64,000 nt of DNA from Entomortierella parvispora E1425 (Eukaryota > Fungi > Mortierellomycota), in contig BQFW01000002.1 in the NCBI GenBank assembly GCA_020891255.1, positions 2,790,001 to 2,854,000 of the forward strand. Direction: 5' to 3'. The notes under the pieces are model-generated. The model did not search any database. It was not told the origin of the DNA and was given only the letters and a program-made list of their open reading frames with translations. A program made the position numbers and the translations under genes. Shown piece by piece: positions 47,186 through 57,288 of this stretch (the stretch's first letter is position 1; the number at the start of each line of letters is the position of its first letter).

Positions 47186-48675
47186 TCATGTAAATATCCA
47201 AATGATCAAGTAATAAACCAAAAAGAACAAAAAGAAGTGAATGCTCCAGAACTGGATACTGCCGGAAACGTGTTTTAGGCTTCCCATCATAGCCCAGGAA
47301 TAGGATAACTCATTGAGTTTTCTATGCGCCACATCGCTTCCTTTCTCTGCAGCCATTAAATACCACTCCTTTGCCTTTTGGTTGTCTTGGACGACACCAA
47401 GCCCTCTCTGGTACATCTCACCTATGCTGGCCAGTGCTGCACTATCTTCTTGGTCTGCAGCTTTCAAAAGCCACTGCATGGCCTTCTCATAGTCTTTAGG
47501 AGCGCCCTCGCCATTGAGGTACATTAAGCCTATGCTGCGTTGGGCGTGACTGTGTCCGTGATTGGCGGCTTTCAAATACCACTCCATAGCCTTCTGGTAG
47601 TCTTGAGGAATACCATTGCCCCTGTAATACAGATTGCCAACACCGAACTGGGCATATACGTTTCCTTGATCGGCAGCTTTCAAAAACCACTCCATAGCTT
47701 TCTGACCGTCTCGGGGAACGCCATTGCCATTGTTGTAGAAACAGCCAATGCTGCATTGGGCATTGCTGTCCCCTTTCTCTGCGCCCTTCAAGAACCACTC
47801 CATAGCCCTCTGATAATCTTGAGGAGTACCGTCGCCCTTATAGTACATATTGCCAATATTGAAATGGGCACTAGCGCTCCCTCGATCTGCGGCCTTCAGA
47901 AACCACTCCATAGCTTGCTGATAGTCCTGGGGAATCCCTTTGCCACTGAGGTAGAGTACGCCAATGTTGAACTGGGCATTGGTGTTCCCCTGATCCGCGG
48001 CCTTCAGAAACCACTCCATAGCTTTCTGGCGGTCCTGGGGAACACCTTTGCCGCTAAAGTAGAGTTCGCCAATCTTGAACTGGGCATTGACTTCTTCCCT
48101 CTCCGCAGCCTTCAGAAGCCACTCCATCGCTTTCTGATAGTCCTGAGGAACGCCTTTGCCATCGAGGTAGAGCTTGCCAAGGTTGAACTGAGCATCGAGT
48201 ACTCCCTGCTCCGCGGCCTTCAGAAACCACTCGAGGGCGCAATCGTAGCTCTGCGCCACGCCTTTGCCCTCGCGGTACAACACGCCAAGGCTGTTTTGAG
48301 CGGCAGCACTTCCTTGACCGGCAGCCTTCAAAAACCATTCAAAGGCGTCAGCGTACTGTTGCTCGGCACGGTTATTTCCGAGGAGGCGAGTCCTGGTCGG
48401 CGTGATTGAATTTCCTTCGATAATATCGTTCAAGCTGGAGATCGGATTTCATGATGGGGACCATGGGTTATTAGAAAGGCGTAGAGACTAACTGGGGAAA
48501 AAGAAAGGAGAGTAGGAGAGGGAGGCGCAGCTTGAGTTTTTGTGGCCAGTGTCGTTTACCTGAATCCATCATCCTCGTTAGTCAAGTCGCTATAAACAGG
48601 TGGACTCTTCTCGTTCACAGCACTGAAGTTGATCGTTTGGACTCTGTCCGGAATGAAGGCAGGGCGATTAGGCAT
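47186..48675 (-). CDS. Sel1-like repeat (SLR) protein, 9 complete plus 1 partial 36-aa repeat, with a C-terminal hydrophobic tail anchor; 2 exons
   Basis: Repeats AQFNxGxxYxxGxGVPQDYQKAMEWFLKAA. Exon 1 48675-48560 (MPNRPAFIPDRVQTIN...PPVY), intron 48435-48559. Ends IQFWSIHFFLFFLVYYLIIWIFT*. Confidence 0.9.
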
Positions 48676-49174
48676 GGCTTTGTTTCCAACGGAAAAGAGT
48701 CCAGCAGCGGTATATGTCTTTTGTGGAGAGATGGAGACAAGGAGTGGGAAGACTGCGAACGAGAACAGAATAATGATTGCGGCTTCGCCAAACAGTCCTG
48801 GGGTTCCACAAAGTAAATTTCAAGGGACCTGCCCGCCCGCAAGCAAACGAGGCACAGCCCGATTAGAGGGTGATGACATGGGTGGGGTGGATATCAACGT
48901 TGTAATAGCGGCAGTATCCATCATTTGGAAAACAAACGCTGCTAAGACGTGGTGGACTATTCGAACTAGAATGCTGTAGGATGGCTCAACACCTAGCGAA
49001 ATGTCTTTTGAAGCTCATCATATTTCACAGGTTTGCTTTTCAAAGTATGGAAAGTCTGATCCATTGTCAGAGCACCGTCCTTGTGAACTCGATTCAGTTT
49101 GGCGCGCGTTTTATATCTACGTCTTGAGCCATGATTCCCAAAACTCGGCTAGTTGACAGCACAGAGAAAAGTCT

Positions 49175-49296
49175 TCCACCGTGGTACATCACGCCTATGT
49201 TGAAAGGGCTGCTTTTACAGACCATTCCATAGCTTTTTGTTTGTCCTGGGGAAGAGCTTTGTCATCGTGACACGCCATGCCTAGGTTGCTCTGACA
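49175..49296 (-). pseudogene. Degenerate Sel1-repeat fragment
   Basis: Reads CQSNLGMACHDDKALPQDKQKAMEWSVKAA, then frameshifts into FNIGVMYHGG; the DNA resembles repeats of the neighbouring Sel1 gene. Confidence 0.75.
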
Positions 49297-50611
49297 AACA
49301 TTCGCAGATTCCTGGTGCAAAACGAATGTGTACCCGTCACTCCTGCTTCGAGATTACTCTCAAGAATGGCCCTTTGCTCAGCTCCCCCTTCCTCCAATAC
49401 TTGGCTATAAGTGGATACACTGCTCTCGCAGTCGCCTTCCCCCTTTCTACAAAAGCTCTCATTCCAATGGTATGACTGTCTAGTGTCTACTCCATCAAAG
49501 AAGTCTGGCCCACAAAACTTTCACCACCTCCGTTCCATCCATAAGATGATATCTTGGAGTTCGAAGAGACAATGCTGACATTAGCTGATTGGGTGACGGT
49601 CAAAGAAGCTCCCCCATCTCTACGCTCTGCGGGATCAGGCTAGGCGTGGCGTAAGGCAGCGTCCACAAGGGTTTCATGGAGTTGGCCCTGAACCACATGA
49701 ACCACCCCCTTACATTAAACAACGGCATCTGCAACCTTTTCCTCTCAATGGCGGAACCTATCAAGCAACTGAGGGGACTTCATCAAAAGATTCATAGTCG
49801 CTGCCACTGCCGATTTCTCCCTTTGAATGCTTTTAGCATCAGCTCAACGATTATGAGGGATTTAGGGCACGAAGATCTCAGAAGGTCTGTAGATCTAGGG
49901 CTTTACGATCCAGGCAAACGGCCGCTTGGACGCGATGACGAAGCGCACGCATCACCTTTTTTCTGTCCCTTCTCTTTGATTTTTTTTCTGCCCTCACCCT
50001 TTCTCCTCTCTCCCCCCCTTTTCTTTTGTCTCTCCTCTTCCACCTTTTTTTCTGTCCCTCCTCTAAAATTTTTTTTTCTGCTCTTCTTCTGAACCAGATC
50101 CCTTTGAACCCTTCCCTTTTGACGATCCAGAGATGCTTCAACAACCTGCCCTAGTTCTTGGCTTGCCCTTTTTTTTGCATGATCTCCTCTCCTTATTTCT
50201 GTGCTCCTTGTATTTTTTCTCGCCGATGTGAGGAGAGAGAACTATTTACGATTCCATGAGCATGTCAAAACAACTCAACTGGCACCACCTCTACACCATC
50301 TATCCCTTATAAATAAGGCGTCGTATCTTTTGTGTTCCTCACTCAACTTCCAAGATACAAAACCACCTACTTTTTATCGATCCACTCAAGGAAGCTAACA
50401 GCAAACATTGGCGAGAAACTTGGTCATTTTAGGTATTATTGAATGAAATGTCTATTATCGCACTCAAGGAAATGTTGCACATTATGAACTTATGAACATT
50501 GTCTAAGATACTGCTCAATTCTTTCTCTTTCTCTCTCAAAATCATGTACCACACCATTAAAGAACAAGCCCACTCACACTCTACAACCCCCCCCCCCCCA
50601 GTACCTGCAAC

Positions 50612-50953
50612 ATGCGACCGATGTCTTCAAAGTTCCTCTGCCTTCTGGCCTCTGTTTTAGTTCTTTCGACTATTTCTTCTGCACTGGCGGCAGTCTTCCA
50701 GGGTCACACTGATACAATGGATGGATTTTGCCATATAGAAGGATATGGCCCCATCCAAGTGGGCGAAACTTTGAGACTTGTAGGAAAAGGGCCACGGGAT
50801 GCCAGGTGCCTATCAATCACATGCGATAATGGAAGTTACTCGGGAGCGACATGCGGTACTGCAAGTTACCAATATGACAAGACTAAGTGCCACCTCGAAG
50901 ATGTTGAAGGTGAATACCCAGCATGCTGCAAGCAAAACGTAGTATGTAAATAA
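50612..50953 (+). CDS. Small secreted cysteine-rich protein, SVWC (single-domain von Willebrand factor type C)-like
   Basis: Hydrophobic signal peptide ending about ALA-A; mature 8-Cys pattern C-x25-C-x4-C-x9-C-x11-C-x11-CC-x5-C with IQVGE and YPACC; intronless. Confidence 0.75.
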   Translation: MRPMSSKFLCLLASVLVLSTISSALAAVFQGHTDTMDGFCHIEGYGPIQVGETLRLVGKGPRDARCLSITCDNGSYSGATCGTASYQYDKTKCHLEDVEGEYPACCKQNVVCK

Positions 50954-50960
50954 AACTAGC

Positions 50961-51248
50961 TCATATTTTTACCGCGTCAACTGGTGGCAGCAACCACGTC
51001 GGATCTGACCCCTCACTGGACTCAAATGTACTGTATAGTATGACTAAGTTGGTTTGCGCATCGGGGTGTCCTTGACTGGTAGCCTTCAAGAACCACTCCA
51101 TTGCTTTCGGATAATCCTGGGGAACACCTGTGCTAATATCTTCCACTTCGTTGAACAAATCATTATATGCTGGTGGTCCCTTCTCGGAGAAGACATTGAG
51201 GTTGATAGTTTGGACTCTATCCGGAATAAAGGCAGGACGAAGAGGCAT
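50961..51248 (-). CDS. Truncated paralog of the Sel1 gene (conserved leader plus about one repeat); mini-protein or pseudogene
   Basis: MPLRPAFIPDRVQTINLNVFSEKGPPAYNDL is followed directly by GVPQDYPKAMEWFLKATSQGHPDAQTNLVILY. Confidence 0.6.
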   Translation of the reverse strand: MPLRPAFIPDRVQTINLNVFSEKGPPAYNDLFNEVEDISTGVPQDYPKAMEWFLKATSQGHPDAQTNLVILYSTFESSEGSDPTWLLPPVDAVKI

Positions 51249-51550
51249 GAGAGATCCAGTGTTTTTTGTGGAAGAAGGTTGGTAAAAGAGTTGAAAGGGA
51301 GGGGGAGTGGCAGACAGACAGAGAGAGAGAGACTGCACGCCATTGATTGTAGCGAAGATAAAAAAGCCTCCTACTTCGCCTTGTGTCTCAGAGTTCCACA
51401 GAGAAGATTTTCAGGGGTGACAGTGCACAGCCCACTTGGATTAGATCAAACAAAGACGTGTTTTTTATTATTTTTGCATGACTTCGCTCCATATCCTCGT
51501 CTCCATTACCGAAGAACCATGTATTGTTATTTGCATTATCAACACAGTAA

Positions 51551-54500
51551 TCATAAAAGTCCAAGAGTCGCCAAAATCTTTTGGACGCTCTCGTCCGTGT
51601 CGTAAGTAGGATAGCCCGGATCCAAAATACTCTTGAATCCCGGCACCTCCTCCTCCTCTCCTTCCTCTTGCTCGTCTTCATGTCCATCCATTTTCTTTTT
51701 GGACAAATGTGTAGTTTCCAATACATCATCTCTGAGGGTCGTCTGGTCTTCGCTGGTTCTGGCATTGGAGATAGATCCACCTCCTACAGATTGAACACTG
51801 GCCGTCGTTGCCCCTCCAGATTTGGTGGGCGCCCCTGCTCCCCCACCACCCGAGTGAGAGGCGGACGTGCTCGAGTTTGACCCGGACCGTTGCATCGGCG
51901 TCGCCATTCTTTCTCCATCCGCTCCCATGAGCACCGGCTCTGACGGTTTGTTCAATGAAACAACCGAGGACGCCGCAGAAGACACGGCAGAGGGTGGACG
52001 ATAAAATCCCTTGTGAGCCACTGCATCGTTCACGCTCAAGGAGGCAGAGGTTGTGGTACTGTTGCTACTACTGGTTCGGAAGAGGGGATTAGCCGCCGCC
52101 AGGGGATCTACGACAGATTTCTTGATCCGTGCACTGCTCTTCCTGAAAGCTTCGCTCATGGAGGCACTGAGGGGATCCAAGTGCAAAGACAACATCTCGT
52201 TAATGGAGGTTGATCCGCTACCACCATTGGACGCCCCTGAGACACCCTCCTGATGCTGCTGGTTGTGAGCGGCCGAGGCAGCTTCGAGCGCTGCCGTCGC
52301 CGTCAAAAGTGTTCGAGAACCGGATGCTGAACCAGATTGAGAGAACGTGCCCGAAGCCACGGCGTTCGGAACGGGGGATGAGGTCATGGATGACAGAGAC
52401 GAGGTCGAAGAAGACATCGAGGGTGAAGCTGAAGAAACTGCAGAGTTAACAGTTGTGGAAGGCGAAGATGTCGAGGAGACGGCTGTCAAAGGACCTTCCA
52501 CCTCCACTGTGGGTAAGGAAGCATTGGCTTTTGGACCAAGAGGGCCAGCGGTCGTCGTAGTTGTGGCCGTGGTGGCCAAGGCTTTCTGTAATCCTTTGTG
52601 GGCAGATACTACAGCACCTGCAGAGCCTGCCAAGAGGTCGCTGGGTCGTCTCTCGAACGGGGTCGAGATCAGCGGACCGTTAATCGAAAAAGTCGACGAG
52701 CCCAAGTTGACTGCGACCGTTCCGGGCTTTGCAGAGACGGATGTGGCCGTGACTGCCGGTGGCAGTGGTGATCCTACAAGGCCTGTCGCTGGATTGCCAG
52801 CTTTGCGGCAAAGGAGTTGATGGCACTGAATCAGGAGATGGAGCCACTTGACATACCGAATCACCATAGCCTCTAACCGCAGTTCCATCGAAGGTTTAGC
52901 TGGCGTCGGCATTGAATGACCTCCACTTCCACCTCCTGTCACTGATCTTGCTGATGTAGTTGAGAAGTCTGCCGCAGATTTATCGCCAGAGAATGCCGTT
53001 GCGCCTTGCATCTTGCTTTTGATTTTGGTCCGCATCCTAGTGCGCCTCCTCTCTCTTCCAGACGCGTTCGTGGAGCCAGAGCTCGTCGGAGGTGTGCTGT
53101 CTTCATAATCCTTTTGGGTCTTTTCTTGCTCGTGAAGCCTTTCCAGTTTTTCATGACTCATGTCTGTATACTCAGGATCAAGGTCGAACAGGGCTATCAA
53201 CTCTTGAGTTGGATCAAGGTCTAGTTCCTTGTCCAAGTCTCTATCTGGGCCATAGATGATTGAGGACTCGGAAATGATATTTACAATCTGTCGCTCAATG
53301 CCCACTATGAATAGTGAAGAAATAGTGTGTTAGAACGATTGTTAACATACATGGTGTGAGTACAACGAAAACAAGCACTTACAGGATGATTCACTTAGAG
53401 CCCTTTCCACGCGACCGGTCAGCAGTCCGAGAGGTTGTTTTAAATTAATCCCATGGCCCCCAACTCCTCCGCCTTGTCGCATCTTCATTTTTTCAAGTTT
53501 CCGAATTCCTTTTTGGACTCGTCCTCGGAACTGCGCTTCTGCCAGGGCCAGCCTATTCAGACGCGCCTCTCCCAATTGATTGTCAACCGCAGACATGGAC
53601 GATGACGAGGACACTCCACTGTTGTGAATGATATTGCCATTTGATTGATCCTTGTTGTCCTTGGCAGGTCCGACCTTCGTGGCCACAAACTCGATCAACA
53701 ACTCGGCCGCCATCTGAATTGTGCACATCCTGAACCGATGTGCGCCTGATTCCGGTCGTCCACAGAGGATGTCAAATAGGCGGCCAATCAGTTCTTCTCG
53801 GTTCTGGACCACAAACTCGGGTCGAATAATTTTGGTCGATTCTGGGATTGTCTCTAGTTCTGTCGTGATGGTTTCTGGTGCGGGCCGAGGTGGTAGTGGA
53901 GGAGGAACATCCGAGTCCAGCTCGGATTCCTTACGAGAAGTAGCCTTGCTCCTATAATCGTGGTCTTCCTCGTCTGTGGATGGATAGTTATCAATTAAGC
54001 CACGGTCTGCCTTGGATGTACTAACAGGTTTCAGCTCCTGTTCAATCTGCGTGGATTCTTCAGCACCCTTGGACTTTAAAGAGTCATCGCCTGTACTTGG
54101 AAGGAGGGGTGCAAGGATGGATGAGGCTTTGCTGCCTCTACGTCGGTGCGATTTCGACTTTGACTGACGAATCGCCTCTCCATCTGCAGAAAGGTTCCTG
54201 GACAGTGAACCACGTGCTGGGAAGCCACTGGCTGTAGGAAGACTGGTCGACAGAATGGTTTTTGAAGACGAGCTCGGGGGGGACGCATGACGACTTGTCT
54301 CGGATGCCAAGAGTTCCTCTGTCTCTCTAGACTCTTGATCATCTTCTTCCGTCTCAAAAAGGGGGGATTCTGTCCTGGATCTCATCCTTGCCGCCGATCC
54401 TGCTGGTCCAAAGAGACTGCCCGTTATAGAAGTCGGCAAGTTTTGTCCTGGCGATGACAGCCAAGTACTAGTCGAACTGCTACCAAGACTCTGATTACTC

Positions 54501-57288
54501 ACAATTGAGTCTGCGGACCGCTCCCTGGACATGGGCGTTGCACCCAGCACCCCTTTGGATGGTGATGTAGAAGACATCAAGTTGCCCTAAAGAGATCAAA
54601 TGAATAGCCACAAGTCAACCACAATGTCAATTTCGGCAGGACAAAAATAAAAAATATTCGCAGGACAACATTGGTGGGTTCTACATCATACCATAAGAAG
54701 GCGGGTCTTGAGTAGCCTCTGCGGGTATATATCAGTTCCGAGCAACACATCTTGCATGACACCTAAACAACCAAATAGGGCAATCCATGGTATGTTAGGA
54801 CCTCTGGCGTACCTTTCAAATTTCTGGCATGTTTTTCAAATCTCGCTGTGCATCAACACAACATATAAAACAATACAATACCTGGGTTACGTCCTGTGAG
54901 ATAAATTAAGGTAAGTGCAGGTAGGACCAGCCGGTCACTATCGATCATGCTAAGATATTCGAAAATGGCCGTCTTGTATGGATTCTGTTGCTGATTGTCA
55001 CTGGAGTTGAGGTTTTGTGCTGGTGCCAAAGGATGGTGGTGATGGTTGATGCGAGCCTGCGGCGTCGGCGAATGCACTGAGAGAATTGTCGAATCCAATC
55101 CTGGGCTGCTTCCTAACAGTCCAAATGAATAAAATTTGGAAGTCACTGGACTGGATGGTCTGCTGGTGTCTGGTGAGGATGGAGATGGTCCAAGAGAGAG
55201 GGGAGAAGGCCCCTGTCGGGTATTGGGCTGATGTGCCGGTGAATTGTTGGAGTAAAGTTGGTTTGAGAATAGTGTCGAGGTCAAGGCTGAGACAAGTGGC
55301 GCATGCTTCAAGACATGGAACGCGTGCAACATTAGGGATAGGGCCACCAAGGGGACCAGTTTTTGAGACTATGTAAAAGCCCAGACGTTAGTCTTGTATT
55401 CAACTGATCTTTCAGTACCTATAAAAGGTCGCAGATGCCTTACCGACGAGGATGATTTTGTCCCGCTTCCGCTACCAGATCCACTTTTGGTGGCATTCGG
55501 TGGAAGAATGCTGTCCAGATACATGGGTCGTAGCAATCTGTTGAGCAGATGCGATATCAGGATCTTGTTGATCTTTGGGACCTCCAGCTCGATAATATCA
55601 TTCACATAGTAGAAGCAGTCCATATGCTCCGCCAGATAATAGTTCATTCTTGAAAACTCCCCTTCTCTAATTGGTGTGGTTAGGAGACAGGGAACAATAG
55701 TCAAAAGATCAATTTCCAGCACGCGGACCAAATTATTGAGGGATTAAAAGGGTCAATGCAGCGGTTTGTTTACCCTGGATGGAGGAGCATGTCATTGACA
55801 GTGGTTCCATAATTGCCAATGAACCAGACAAGGTTTGAAAAATATGTGGTCGTTGTCCGGTCAAGGATAAACTCCTGCATCTGTTTGTCATCCACACTGT
55901 AGACGTTAAGGGTGATGACACGAACAGCAATCCTGATCATGCTCTCCTCGTGGTTGAAAAACTTGATGGCCTCAGAATACCTATGATCCCAGTTGAGCCG
56001 AATGTCAGTTACAAGTCATTTTCCAATCACGGTTCACTTCCTGCCATGTGCTGGACGTCCTTACAGAGGAAAGTCGTCCAAATGTTCGTTGAAGAAAAAA
56101 TAGATTGTGTCCTTGGAAAGTTTGAAGGACAGGGTCCTGAGAAGATAAATATAATAAGCCAATATCTCATCATTCGAGAAATCGTAGCGCACACCGATGA
56201 CCTGGTTCACATAGTTGTTGGACAGCAAAAAGTCTGGAGAGAGAACAAAGCAATTGTTGGTTAATTTCTACCATTGTAGCAAATCAGTTGATCCTCAAGC
56301 AAGTGTAGCTCATGATGTCATTCAAATCTTACATAATGACTCTTGCGAGCGCACGTTCTCAAACATGATGTTGAGTGTCTGTAGGACCTGTACGATTAGG
56401 GATCCATCCTGCTTGCTCTGCAATATCTTGAGAAAGTGAAAATGGACATTTTGTTCAAAGAAATGCCTACGTTCAAGTCGATAAAAGGGGTGCAAGTGTG
56501 AGTAACACGATAGTAAAAATCGACATGCAGCAGAGCATGCGGTTCTTCCCCTCAAGGGCTTGTTCCTGAACAATGAACCGTAAAAATAAAAAAAAAACAC
56601 AATAGCCGAACACAGGGCAAGCTCCTATTTTCCCTTGTGTACTCACTCGAGAAGAAGGGGATCGTGCTGATCCCCCCAGATCAAGAGCTGGGTCAGCTCT
56701 TTCAGACAGCCGATGATGCTCTCCTCGTTTGCATCCGCTGAAAAGTGCTGAAGCTGTTCACAAAGTGCTCTAAAAGATAACAAAAAAAAAAATCCAATGC
56801 GAGTTAGTCGTTGTGGCTGACGGTGCCGCGGGTCGGAGGGATTGCTGCATGGTGTGTTGCGATGTGGTTCCCCGAAGCAGGTTCAGAGACTGTCTGCTAA
56901 TCAGACAGAAAGTGAGGGATCAACACTTGCACTGCTCCTGCCGCTGCTGGAGGCCCCAGCTCTGCTCTGCCCGCTCCTTGTCTGCACCTTGGTTCCAATG
57001 ACAGGCAGTAAAAAAGAAGTGGCCCGGCAAAGGACAACATGGCTGAAGCTTGGACCCAAGCGGTAAAAAGCATGTTCAAGGGGGGGTCTTCTTTGGCTGA
57101 GTCCTCTCTCCTGGAAAAGAATCCTGCTGTCTGTCCCCACAGTTTTGCTGTATTTCCTGCAAGCGAAGGTCGACTGGGCACAGCTGCATGAGGGCAAAGA
57201 ATGAATGCAATGCACGGCGGTCTGCATACTTTAAATTCTCGAGACTGAAACGATCCGGCTTGGGTTTGTTCCACAGGAGGTTGAACAT
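51551..57288 (-). CDS. CLEC16A: CLEC16A/TT9/Ema (FPL-domain) endolysosomal/autophagy protein, multi-exon
   Basis: RFSLENLK|ALCEQL, LKELTQLLIWGDQHD, FFEQNVHFHFLKIL, VQVLQTLNIMFENV, YYIYLLRTLSFKL, IKFFNHEESMIRIAVRVITLNVY and EHMDCFYYVNDI; long Ser-rich C-terminus. Confidence 0.9.

Follow-up and report, generated by a model that had tools for sequence, protein, structure and literature searches.

A gene of the fungus Entomortierella parvispora E1425, intact and chromosomally integrated, encodes what is, on the sequence evidence set out below, a new member of the known SVWC family in an unexpected kingdom. We regard it as probable that this is a real, single-copy nuclear fungal gene belonging to the arachnid branch of the family, that it was derived from an arachnid by horizontal transfer, and that it has been retained as a secreted binding protein. 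The gene lies in the stretch of 64,000 nucleotides analysed here (the window), which corresponds to positions 2790001-2854000 of contig C2 in the 38.9-Mb, 20-contig assembly, and it is the sole match in the whole genome both to the Pfam profile and to the family profile.

The complete coding sequence, located from the open reading frame list, the Pfam SVWC match and its being the only match in the genome, occupies positions 50612-50953 on the plus strand and runs from ATG to TAA over 113 codons plus the stop. Since the reading frame continues without interruption, the gene is intronless, as the initial annotation had stated. Direct reading of the translation likewise bears out the signal peptide, the mature part of 87 aa and the exact spacing of the eight cysteines that had been described (C-x25-C-x4-C-x9-C-x11-C-x11-CC-x5-C, with Cys at 40, 66, 71, 81, 93, 105, 106 and 112), together with the VGE motif at aa 50-52 and YPACC at aa 102-106. 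The signal peptide (aa 1-26, 50612-50689, +) combines basic residues R2 and K7 with the hydrophobic core FLCLLASVLVLSTISSALA and alanines at -3 and -1 relative to A27, the predicted cut falling after ALA; its modelled helix covers residues 6-21, and in the alignment it corresponds to the signal peptides of spider proteins. It is followed by an N-terminal extension around Cys1 (aa 27-45, 50690-50746, +), which carries the arachnid-type motif G-x-T-D-T-x-x-G-F-C, lies outside the Pfam domain and is modelled with strands at 27-32 and 39-42. The Pfam SVWC profile match itself takes up aa 46-112 (50747-50947, +), equivalent to profile positions 7-66 of 66. Within it, the alignment with spider proteins reveals a six-residue insertion, LRLVGK (aa 54-59, 50771-50788, +), present in the fungal protein only, and this insertion explains the spacing of 25 between the first and second cysteines.

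The assignment to SVWC, which the initial annotation had proposed from the cysteine pattern, was confirmed by profile: PF15430 was matched with 30.4 bits and E 4.7e-7, above the curated gathering cut-off of 27 bits, and the same profile scored 30.8 bits in the genome scan. No other Pfam family, hydrophobin and CFEM included, was matched even at E<=10, and as SVWC is the sole family matched at that level, a hydrophobin or CFEM fold, which had been named beforehand as the outcome that would overturn the assignment, was rejected. The protein shows the defining layout of the family, being small and of secreted type with a signal peptide, a single domain and no second Pfam domain, and it carries the xPxCC element near the C-terminus, with gaps of 25/4/9/11/8+YPA/5. 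Compared with the consensus published for housefly SVWCs, C-(18,23)-C-(4)-C-(10,16)-C-(6,23)-C-(8,13)-xPx-CC-(1,5)-C (PMC11515477), two of these gaps fall just outside a range drawn from one species (C1-C2, 25 against 18-23; C3-C4, 9 against 10-16), and, when the six-residue insertion is taken into account, the gaps agree with those of the spider members. Judged by HMM score, by the cysteine framework with xPxCC and by the single secreted-type domain, the predicted protein is an SVWC. Structural comparisons point the same way. Its neighbours in the ESM Atlas, by features as well as by shape, are arthropod SVWC clusters, and a search with those clusters left out returned nothing above 0.77 and no fungal cluster. 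A sequence search of the PDB with the single fungal protein gave no match, and a search with the family profile reached the tick protein CirpT1. The model suggests a four-disulfide, beta-rich SVWC fold, which is supportive and not decisive alone.

The closest relatives of the protein are found in spiders. An exhaustive phmmer search of 1.84 billion representative proteins at a threshold of E<=1e-3 returned 11 matches, all of them spider SVWC/La1-like venom-type proteins, the best with E 8e-12 and 41% identity and the set as a whole spanning 33-45%, and an E of 8e-12 against a collection of that size places the SVWC relationship far beyond chance. The matches bear the names venom protein, toxin-like protein 14, SVWC domain-containing protein, liphistoxin, theraphotoxin and Tx-773, and they come from Lampona, Araneus, Argiope, Caerostris, Uloborus, Heteropoda, Liphistius, Selenotholus and Larinioides, genera that span all three suborder-level groups of spiders (Mesothelae, Mygalomorphae and Araneomorphae). 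Among the same 1.84 billion representatives, none from an insect, crustacean, mollusc, scorpion or fungus came within E<=1e-3. A word-indexed protein search with the fungal protein as sole query gave no match; with the alignment as query it gave 17, all from spiders and none that could serve as an outgroup. An exact-protein look-up for contigs encoding the fungal protein found none on record. The kinship first proposed, with a combined SVWC/Vago/La1 group, thus holds for the arachnid branch that comprises La1-like proteins, 'toxin-like protein 14' and the tick 8.9-kDa proteins, and not for insect Vago, to which no kinship is detectable, as no insect protein matches at E<=1e-3. The nearest relatives and the N-terminal TDT-x-x-G-x-C extension are both those of the arachnid La1-like subfamily.

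Conservation extends well beyond the cysteines. All 16 columns that are invariant in the 11 spider proteins (the eight Cys plus D34, T35, G38, G51, D63, G74, G100 and P103) are kept by the fungal protein, which also agrees with the spider majority at 31 of the 85 remaining columns; near-invariant spider residues are altered at S36M, Y61P, G80T and V96E. A motif before Cys1, G-x-TDT-x-x-G-F/Y-C, is common to the fungal and spider proteins and lies outside the Pfam domain. Over the mature part, fungus-spider identity is 33-46% (median 42%), and identity among representative spider proteins is 33-60% (median 45%), so that the fungal protein stands about as near to the spider proteins as these stand to one another. 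Phylogenetic analysis of the fungal sequence together with 29 spider proteins gave an unresolved tree, in which the fungal row forms a long branch and which, for want of an outgroup, is unrooted; neither a donor nor an order of events was drawn from it, and the nesting of the fungal protein inside Arachnida therefore rests on the match lists and the shared motifs.

The genomic setting of the gene is fungal. Its neighbours in the window are F-box/WD40 and Sel1-repeat genes, identified by Pfam, and the adjacent Sel1 protein has its best named matches in Linnemannia, Mortierella, Lobosporangium and Entomortierella; as these neighbouring genes are of Mortierellaceae type, the host is a fungus. On the left, about 1.9 kb from the SVWC gene, lies an intact Sel1-repeat gene with nine repeats and a leader exon (47186-48675, -), and on the right a truncated Sel1 paralogue, consisting of a leader and one repeat, ends 8 bases from the SVWC stop (50961-51338, -); both were recognised from Pfam Sel1 and the repeat families, and repeat analysis added a lone Sel1 repeat remnant at 49207-49268. 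With nine 108-base repeats in the intact gene, a truncated paralogue and a lone remnant, this Sel1-repeat cluster appears to be in flux, and the leaders of the intact and truncated genes are 75% identical (48575-48676 and 51148-51249). A relative, X3, represented by a sample from another study with the same organism label, has 1399 extra bases, about 13 repeats of 108 bases, between 51125 and 51133, to the right of the SVWC gene. A paralogous contig that joins 49253 to 51082 had suggested that a stretch of 1.8 kb was inserted into a Sel1 gene; this idea was rejected, because repeat loss explains the remnant, X3 holding some 13 more of the 108-base repeats. Shortly downstream there are two long Ser/Thr-rich frames (51551-53305, -, and 53342-54580, -), which have no Pfam match and show about 93% nucleotide identity in X3.

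Contigs from two samples bear on the placement of the gene. A short-read contig of 14,880 bases, probably from the source sample, joins the whole SVWC ORF to the downstream genes at a depth of 77, against 75 upstream, so that the check by read coverage over the flanks that the initial annotation had called for came out in favour of a resident gene. A contig of 12,086 bases from X3 is collinear with the window over 48539-53000, with one piece spanning 49925-51007 and an identity of about 88-93% in this region. With the stretch collinear in both, the gene is older than the split of the two strains, which are about 88% identical here.

The region upstream of the gene (49950-50611, +) may act as promoter and 5' leader, a function suggested by the sequence and the repeat family. 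It had been described as AT-rich, and its GC content is indeed 45% against a window mean near 50%; it is better described as pyrimidine-rich, with CT tracts and a run of 13 C. The pyrimidine-rich repeats of this putative promoter lie at 49957-50076, the element TATAAATA at 50308-50315 and the C run at 50587-50599, and the start codon stands in the context caacATG, with A at -3. The repeats consist of a 31-base unit (TTTTTTCTGTCCC...) present three times, some 550-650 bases upstream of the SVWC gene, and this triplicate unit may be either a promoter element or a simple repeat. The 13-C homopolymer lies 12 bases before the start codon, and short-read contigs of the source sample break nearby upstream, at about 50521-50550. 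The composition of the ORF also departs from its surroundings: ten ORFs nearby have a GC3 of 0.48-0.61 and this ORF one of 0.41, and no other in the set has so low a codon adaptation, which might be taken as a mild sign of foreign origin or of low expression. The GC3 of spider SVWC exons ranges from 25% to 82%, a spread so wide that the low GC3 of the fungal gene is uninformative on the donor, and an attempt to infer the donor from composition was rejected for this reason.

Horizontal acquisition from an arachnid, or from a close arthropod not yet sampled, is the most likely origin of the gene to judge from these comparisons, because its sole detectable relatives are spider venom-gland proteins. 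The initial annotation had offered horizontal acquisition and convergence side by side; the former is favoured, and convergence is excluded by an identity of about 40% across the whole mature protein, non-cysteine positions included. It had also called a fungal SVWC unexpected, and this is borne out, as exhaustive protein searches found no fungal relative and a survey of 2024 listed 2869 SVWC genes in 407 species, mostly Arthropoda with a few Mollusca (PMC11515477). In the literature searched, no report of a fungal SVWC was found. Taken with the intron-bearing arrays of spiders as opposed to one intronless copy in the fungus, the confinement of the surveyed genes to arthropods and a few molluscs and the lack of a fungal report make an arthropod-to-fungus direction the economical reading. 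Spiders appear to be the nearest sampled donors, and poorly sampled soil arachnids are a possible source as well. According to this scheme, an arachnid or near-arthropod SVWC gene would have entered the fungal lineage, possibly as a processed copy, and the transfer would have preceded the split of the two strains, between which identity in the SVWC region is now about 88%. As no intron is present, a processed copy comes to mind, and later intron loss would fit as well; neither a poly(A) remnant nor a transposon footprint was seen to mark an insertion in the window sequence or the repeat analysis. The idea of a viral vector was also followed up by two degenerate-pattern scans of viral contigs, which yielded 16 loci, none encoding an SVWC, the best of them lying within an ordinary phage ORF. 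A scan of JGI metagenomes produced a single locus, which proved spurious, being an antisense frame of a bacterial citrate-synthase-like gene.

As to function, the predicted precursor is of secretory type and belongs to a disulfide-rich binding fold class, without catalytic features. Its signal peptide would be cleaved and the protein exported to act outside the hypha, and by analogy with its relatives it would act by binding and not by catalysis. La1-like peptides have no known function (PMC5198561), and the mechanism is for that reason drawn from family analogy. Our best guess at the target is a molecule found in arthropods that either graze on the fungus or serve as its hosts, a role to which both the donor lineage and the insect association to which the genus name Entomortierella refers (PMC11461907) seem to point. 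A captured arachnid SVWC of the venom and immune family might be secreted against arthropods, whose own SVWC signals it could imitate or whose grazing it could deter in the manner of a toxin, a suggestion that we put forward tentatively.

A microbial cell-wall glycan would be our second choice of target. The gene could have the same origin and serve another use, as a microbe-binding lectin or agglutinin directed toward bacteria, whether competitors or Burkholderiaceae-related endobacteria, and not toward animals, which we consider a real possibility and still short of an even chance. There is a precedent in the housefly protein MdSVWC1, which binds peptidoglycan, LPS and glucan and causes Ca2+-dependent agglutination of bacteria and yeast (PMC11515477; reviewed in PMC13115929), and strain E1425 is host to a Mycoavidus endobacterium (PMC8759367). 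However, no insect SVWC is near enough to the fungal protein to score at E<=1e-3, and the nearest solved relative, CirpT1, binds a protein and not a glycan (PMC6955305). We give arthropod-directed and microbe-binding roles each a modest and comparable share of belief and a silent relic a smaller one, with the rest left over.

It is unlikely that the transferred gene has since become a silent or neutral relic, its frame open but neither expressed nor of any use to the fungus. No RNA run with the SVWC gene was found, the low GC3 and codon adaptation described above would suit such a state, and the gene sits in a fast-rearranging Sel1 cluster that includes truncated paralogues. However, a neutral frame of 342 bases would be expected to gain stops or to lose cysteines, and here the intact frame has a favourable start context, a signal peptide and 16 of 16 family-invariant residues kept; moreover, a relative whose surrounding non-coding DNA has diverged by about 12% still has the stretch at this position.

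Vertical inheritance would require that an old opisthokont SVWC domain survived in this fungal lineage, in arthropods and in molluscs and was lost almost everywhere else, and we consider this highly improbable. Folds resembling those of VWC and beta-microseminoprotein occur widely in animals, and fungal annotation often misses small secreted genes, which makes absence from protein databases weak evidence. Nevertheless, an identity between fungus and spider about equal to that among spiders, with the N-terminal extension in common, is unexpected if the lineages parted about a billion years ago, and no insect, crustacean or mollusc SVWC matches at E<=1e-3. Many annotated Mortierellaceae proteomes match the neighbouring Sel1 gene and none matches the SVWC gene, and the phmmer search of 1.84 billion representatives, with no fungal protein among its matches, likewise did not find the family widespread in fungi, in keeping with the unexpectedness first claimed. 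Contamination or a chimeric assembly, in which spider or other arthropod DNA was misjoined into a fungal contig, could be suspected because the nearest relatives are animal proteins and a break in the source sample's short-read contigs falls 60 bases before the ATG, within or close to the poly-C tract, but it is effectively excluded by the 14.9-kb short-read contig that carries the ORF and downstream fungal genes at flank-level depth and by the collinear 12-kb contig that holds the whole region in a separate study's sample, and it is further opposed by the intronless fungal gene as against spider genes of 8-15 kb with two introns, by an identity of merely about 40% to any animal protein, and by the origin of the E1425 DNA from an endobacterium-cured axenic culture grown from spores (PMC8759367).

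With this gene, SVWC, in the literature an arthropod family of innate immunity and venom with a few mollusc members, would gain a wider host range. To our knowledge, well-supported animal-to-fungus gene transfers are few, and the present one would provide a clean test case of transfer from arthropod to fungus, in a genus named for its association with insects. Should the proposed arthropod-directed role prove true, it would be a first instance of a fungus using a secreted-effector gene of animal origin against animals. The host can be cultured, which makes the SVWC protein tractable, and its study could inform on the La1-like venom peptides.

The systems to which the fungal gene can be compared differ in their closeness. 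For arthropod-to-fungus transfer as such, a precedent is offered by the mosquito-like polyubiquitin of Zancudomyces culisetae, likewise an early-diverging, arthropod-associated fungus (PMC5026252); as far as the accessible part of that source describes it, the case concerns another gene, donor and phylum, and an obligate gut symbiont in place of the culturable soil fungus considered here. Insect SVWCs such as Vago and MdSVWC1 belong to the same Pfam family and are likewise of the secreted single-domain type, with known roles in cytokine-like signalling and in pattern recognition through the binding of microbial glycans (PMC13115929, PMC11515477). They differ in that none matches the fungal protein at E<=1e-3 and in that the fungal C1-C2 and C3-C4 gaps fall outside the housefly consensus. 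The tick protein CirpT1 of the '8.9 kDa family' (PDB 6RPT, 6RQJ) resembles the fungal protein by fold and profile only. It is built from an N-terminal Greek-key sheet like that of microseminoprotein and a flat, VWC-like C-terminal part, held by four conserved cystine bridges, and its N-terminal extension adds a strand that matches the fungal extension in kind (PMC6955305). In vertebrate complement C5, CirpT1 attaches to the MG4 domain (PMC6955305), and nothing points to that target for the fungal protein. Scorpion La1 and La1-like proteins are eight-cysteine venom peptides with a single VWC-type domain as well, of 73-100 aa, and the motif ...NCTLVRGRGSYPDCC of the La1-like 'subfamily 2 / SVWC-like' group resembles the fungal ...KCHLEDVEGEYPACC (PMC5198561). 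No match from a scorpion passed E<=1e-3 when the fungal protein was the query.

The closest counterparts are the spider SVWC venom-gland proteins, namely 'toxin-like protein 14', U36-liphistoxin, U19-theraphotoxin, the Lampona venom protein and Heteropoda Tx-773. Their genes span 8-15 kb and have two long introns at conserved positions, after the TDT-x-x-G motif and before Cys4, and tandem arrays place several members on one contig in Caerostris, Araneus and Larinioides. The SVWC genes of Uloborus and Araneus (L003, 6001-20909; L004, 6001-14219 and 19517-20219) share the same two intron positions, although the introns are 1-9 kb long. Another member of the family starts 5 kb downstream in Araneus, and at the locus L003 exon 1 recurs, with 83% identity, 3 kb past the gene. 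The organisation of the arachnid subfamily in three exons with two introns, both carried by Uloborus and Araneus, is thus not shared by the continuous fungal ORF. Like the spider SVWCs, the fungal protein has a length of about 100-115 aa, a signal peptide, an identical eight-cysteine framework and the VGE and G-x-YP-x-CC motifs; unlike them, it is found in a fungal host, is encoded by a single copy and not by tandem arrays, has no introns where they have two long ones, and carries an insertion after VGE.
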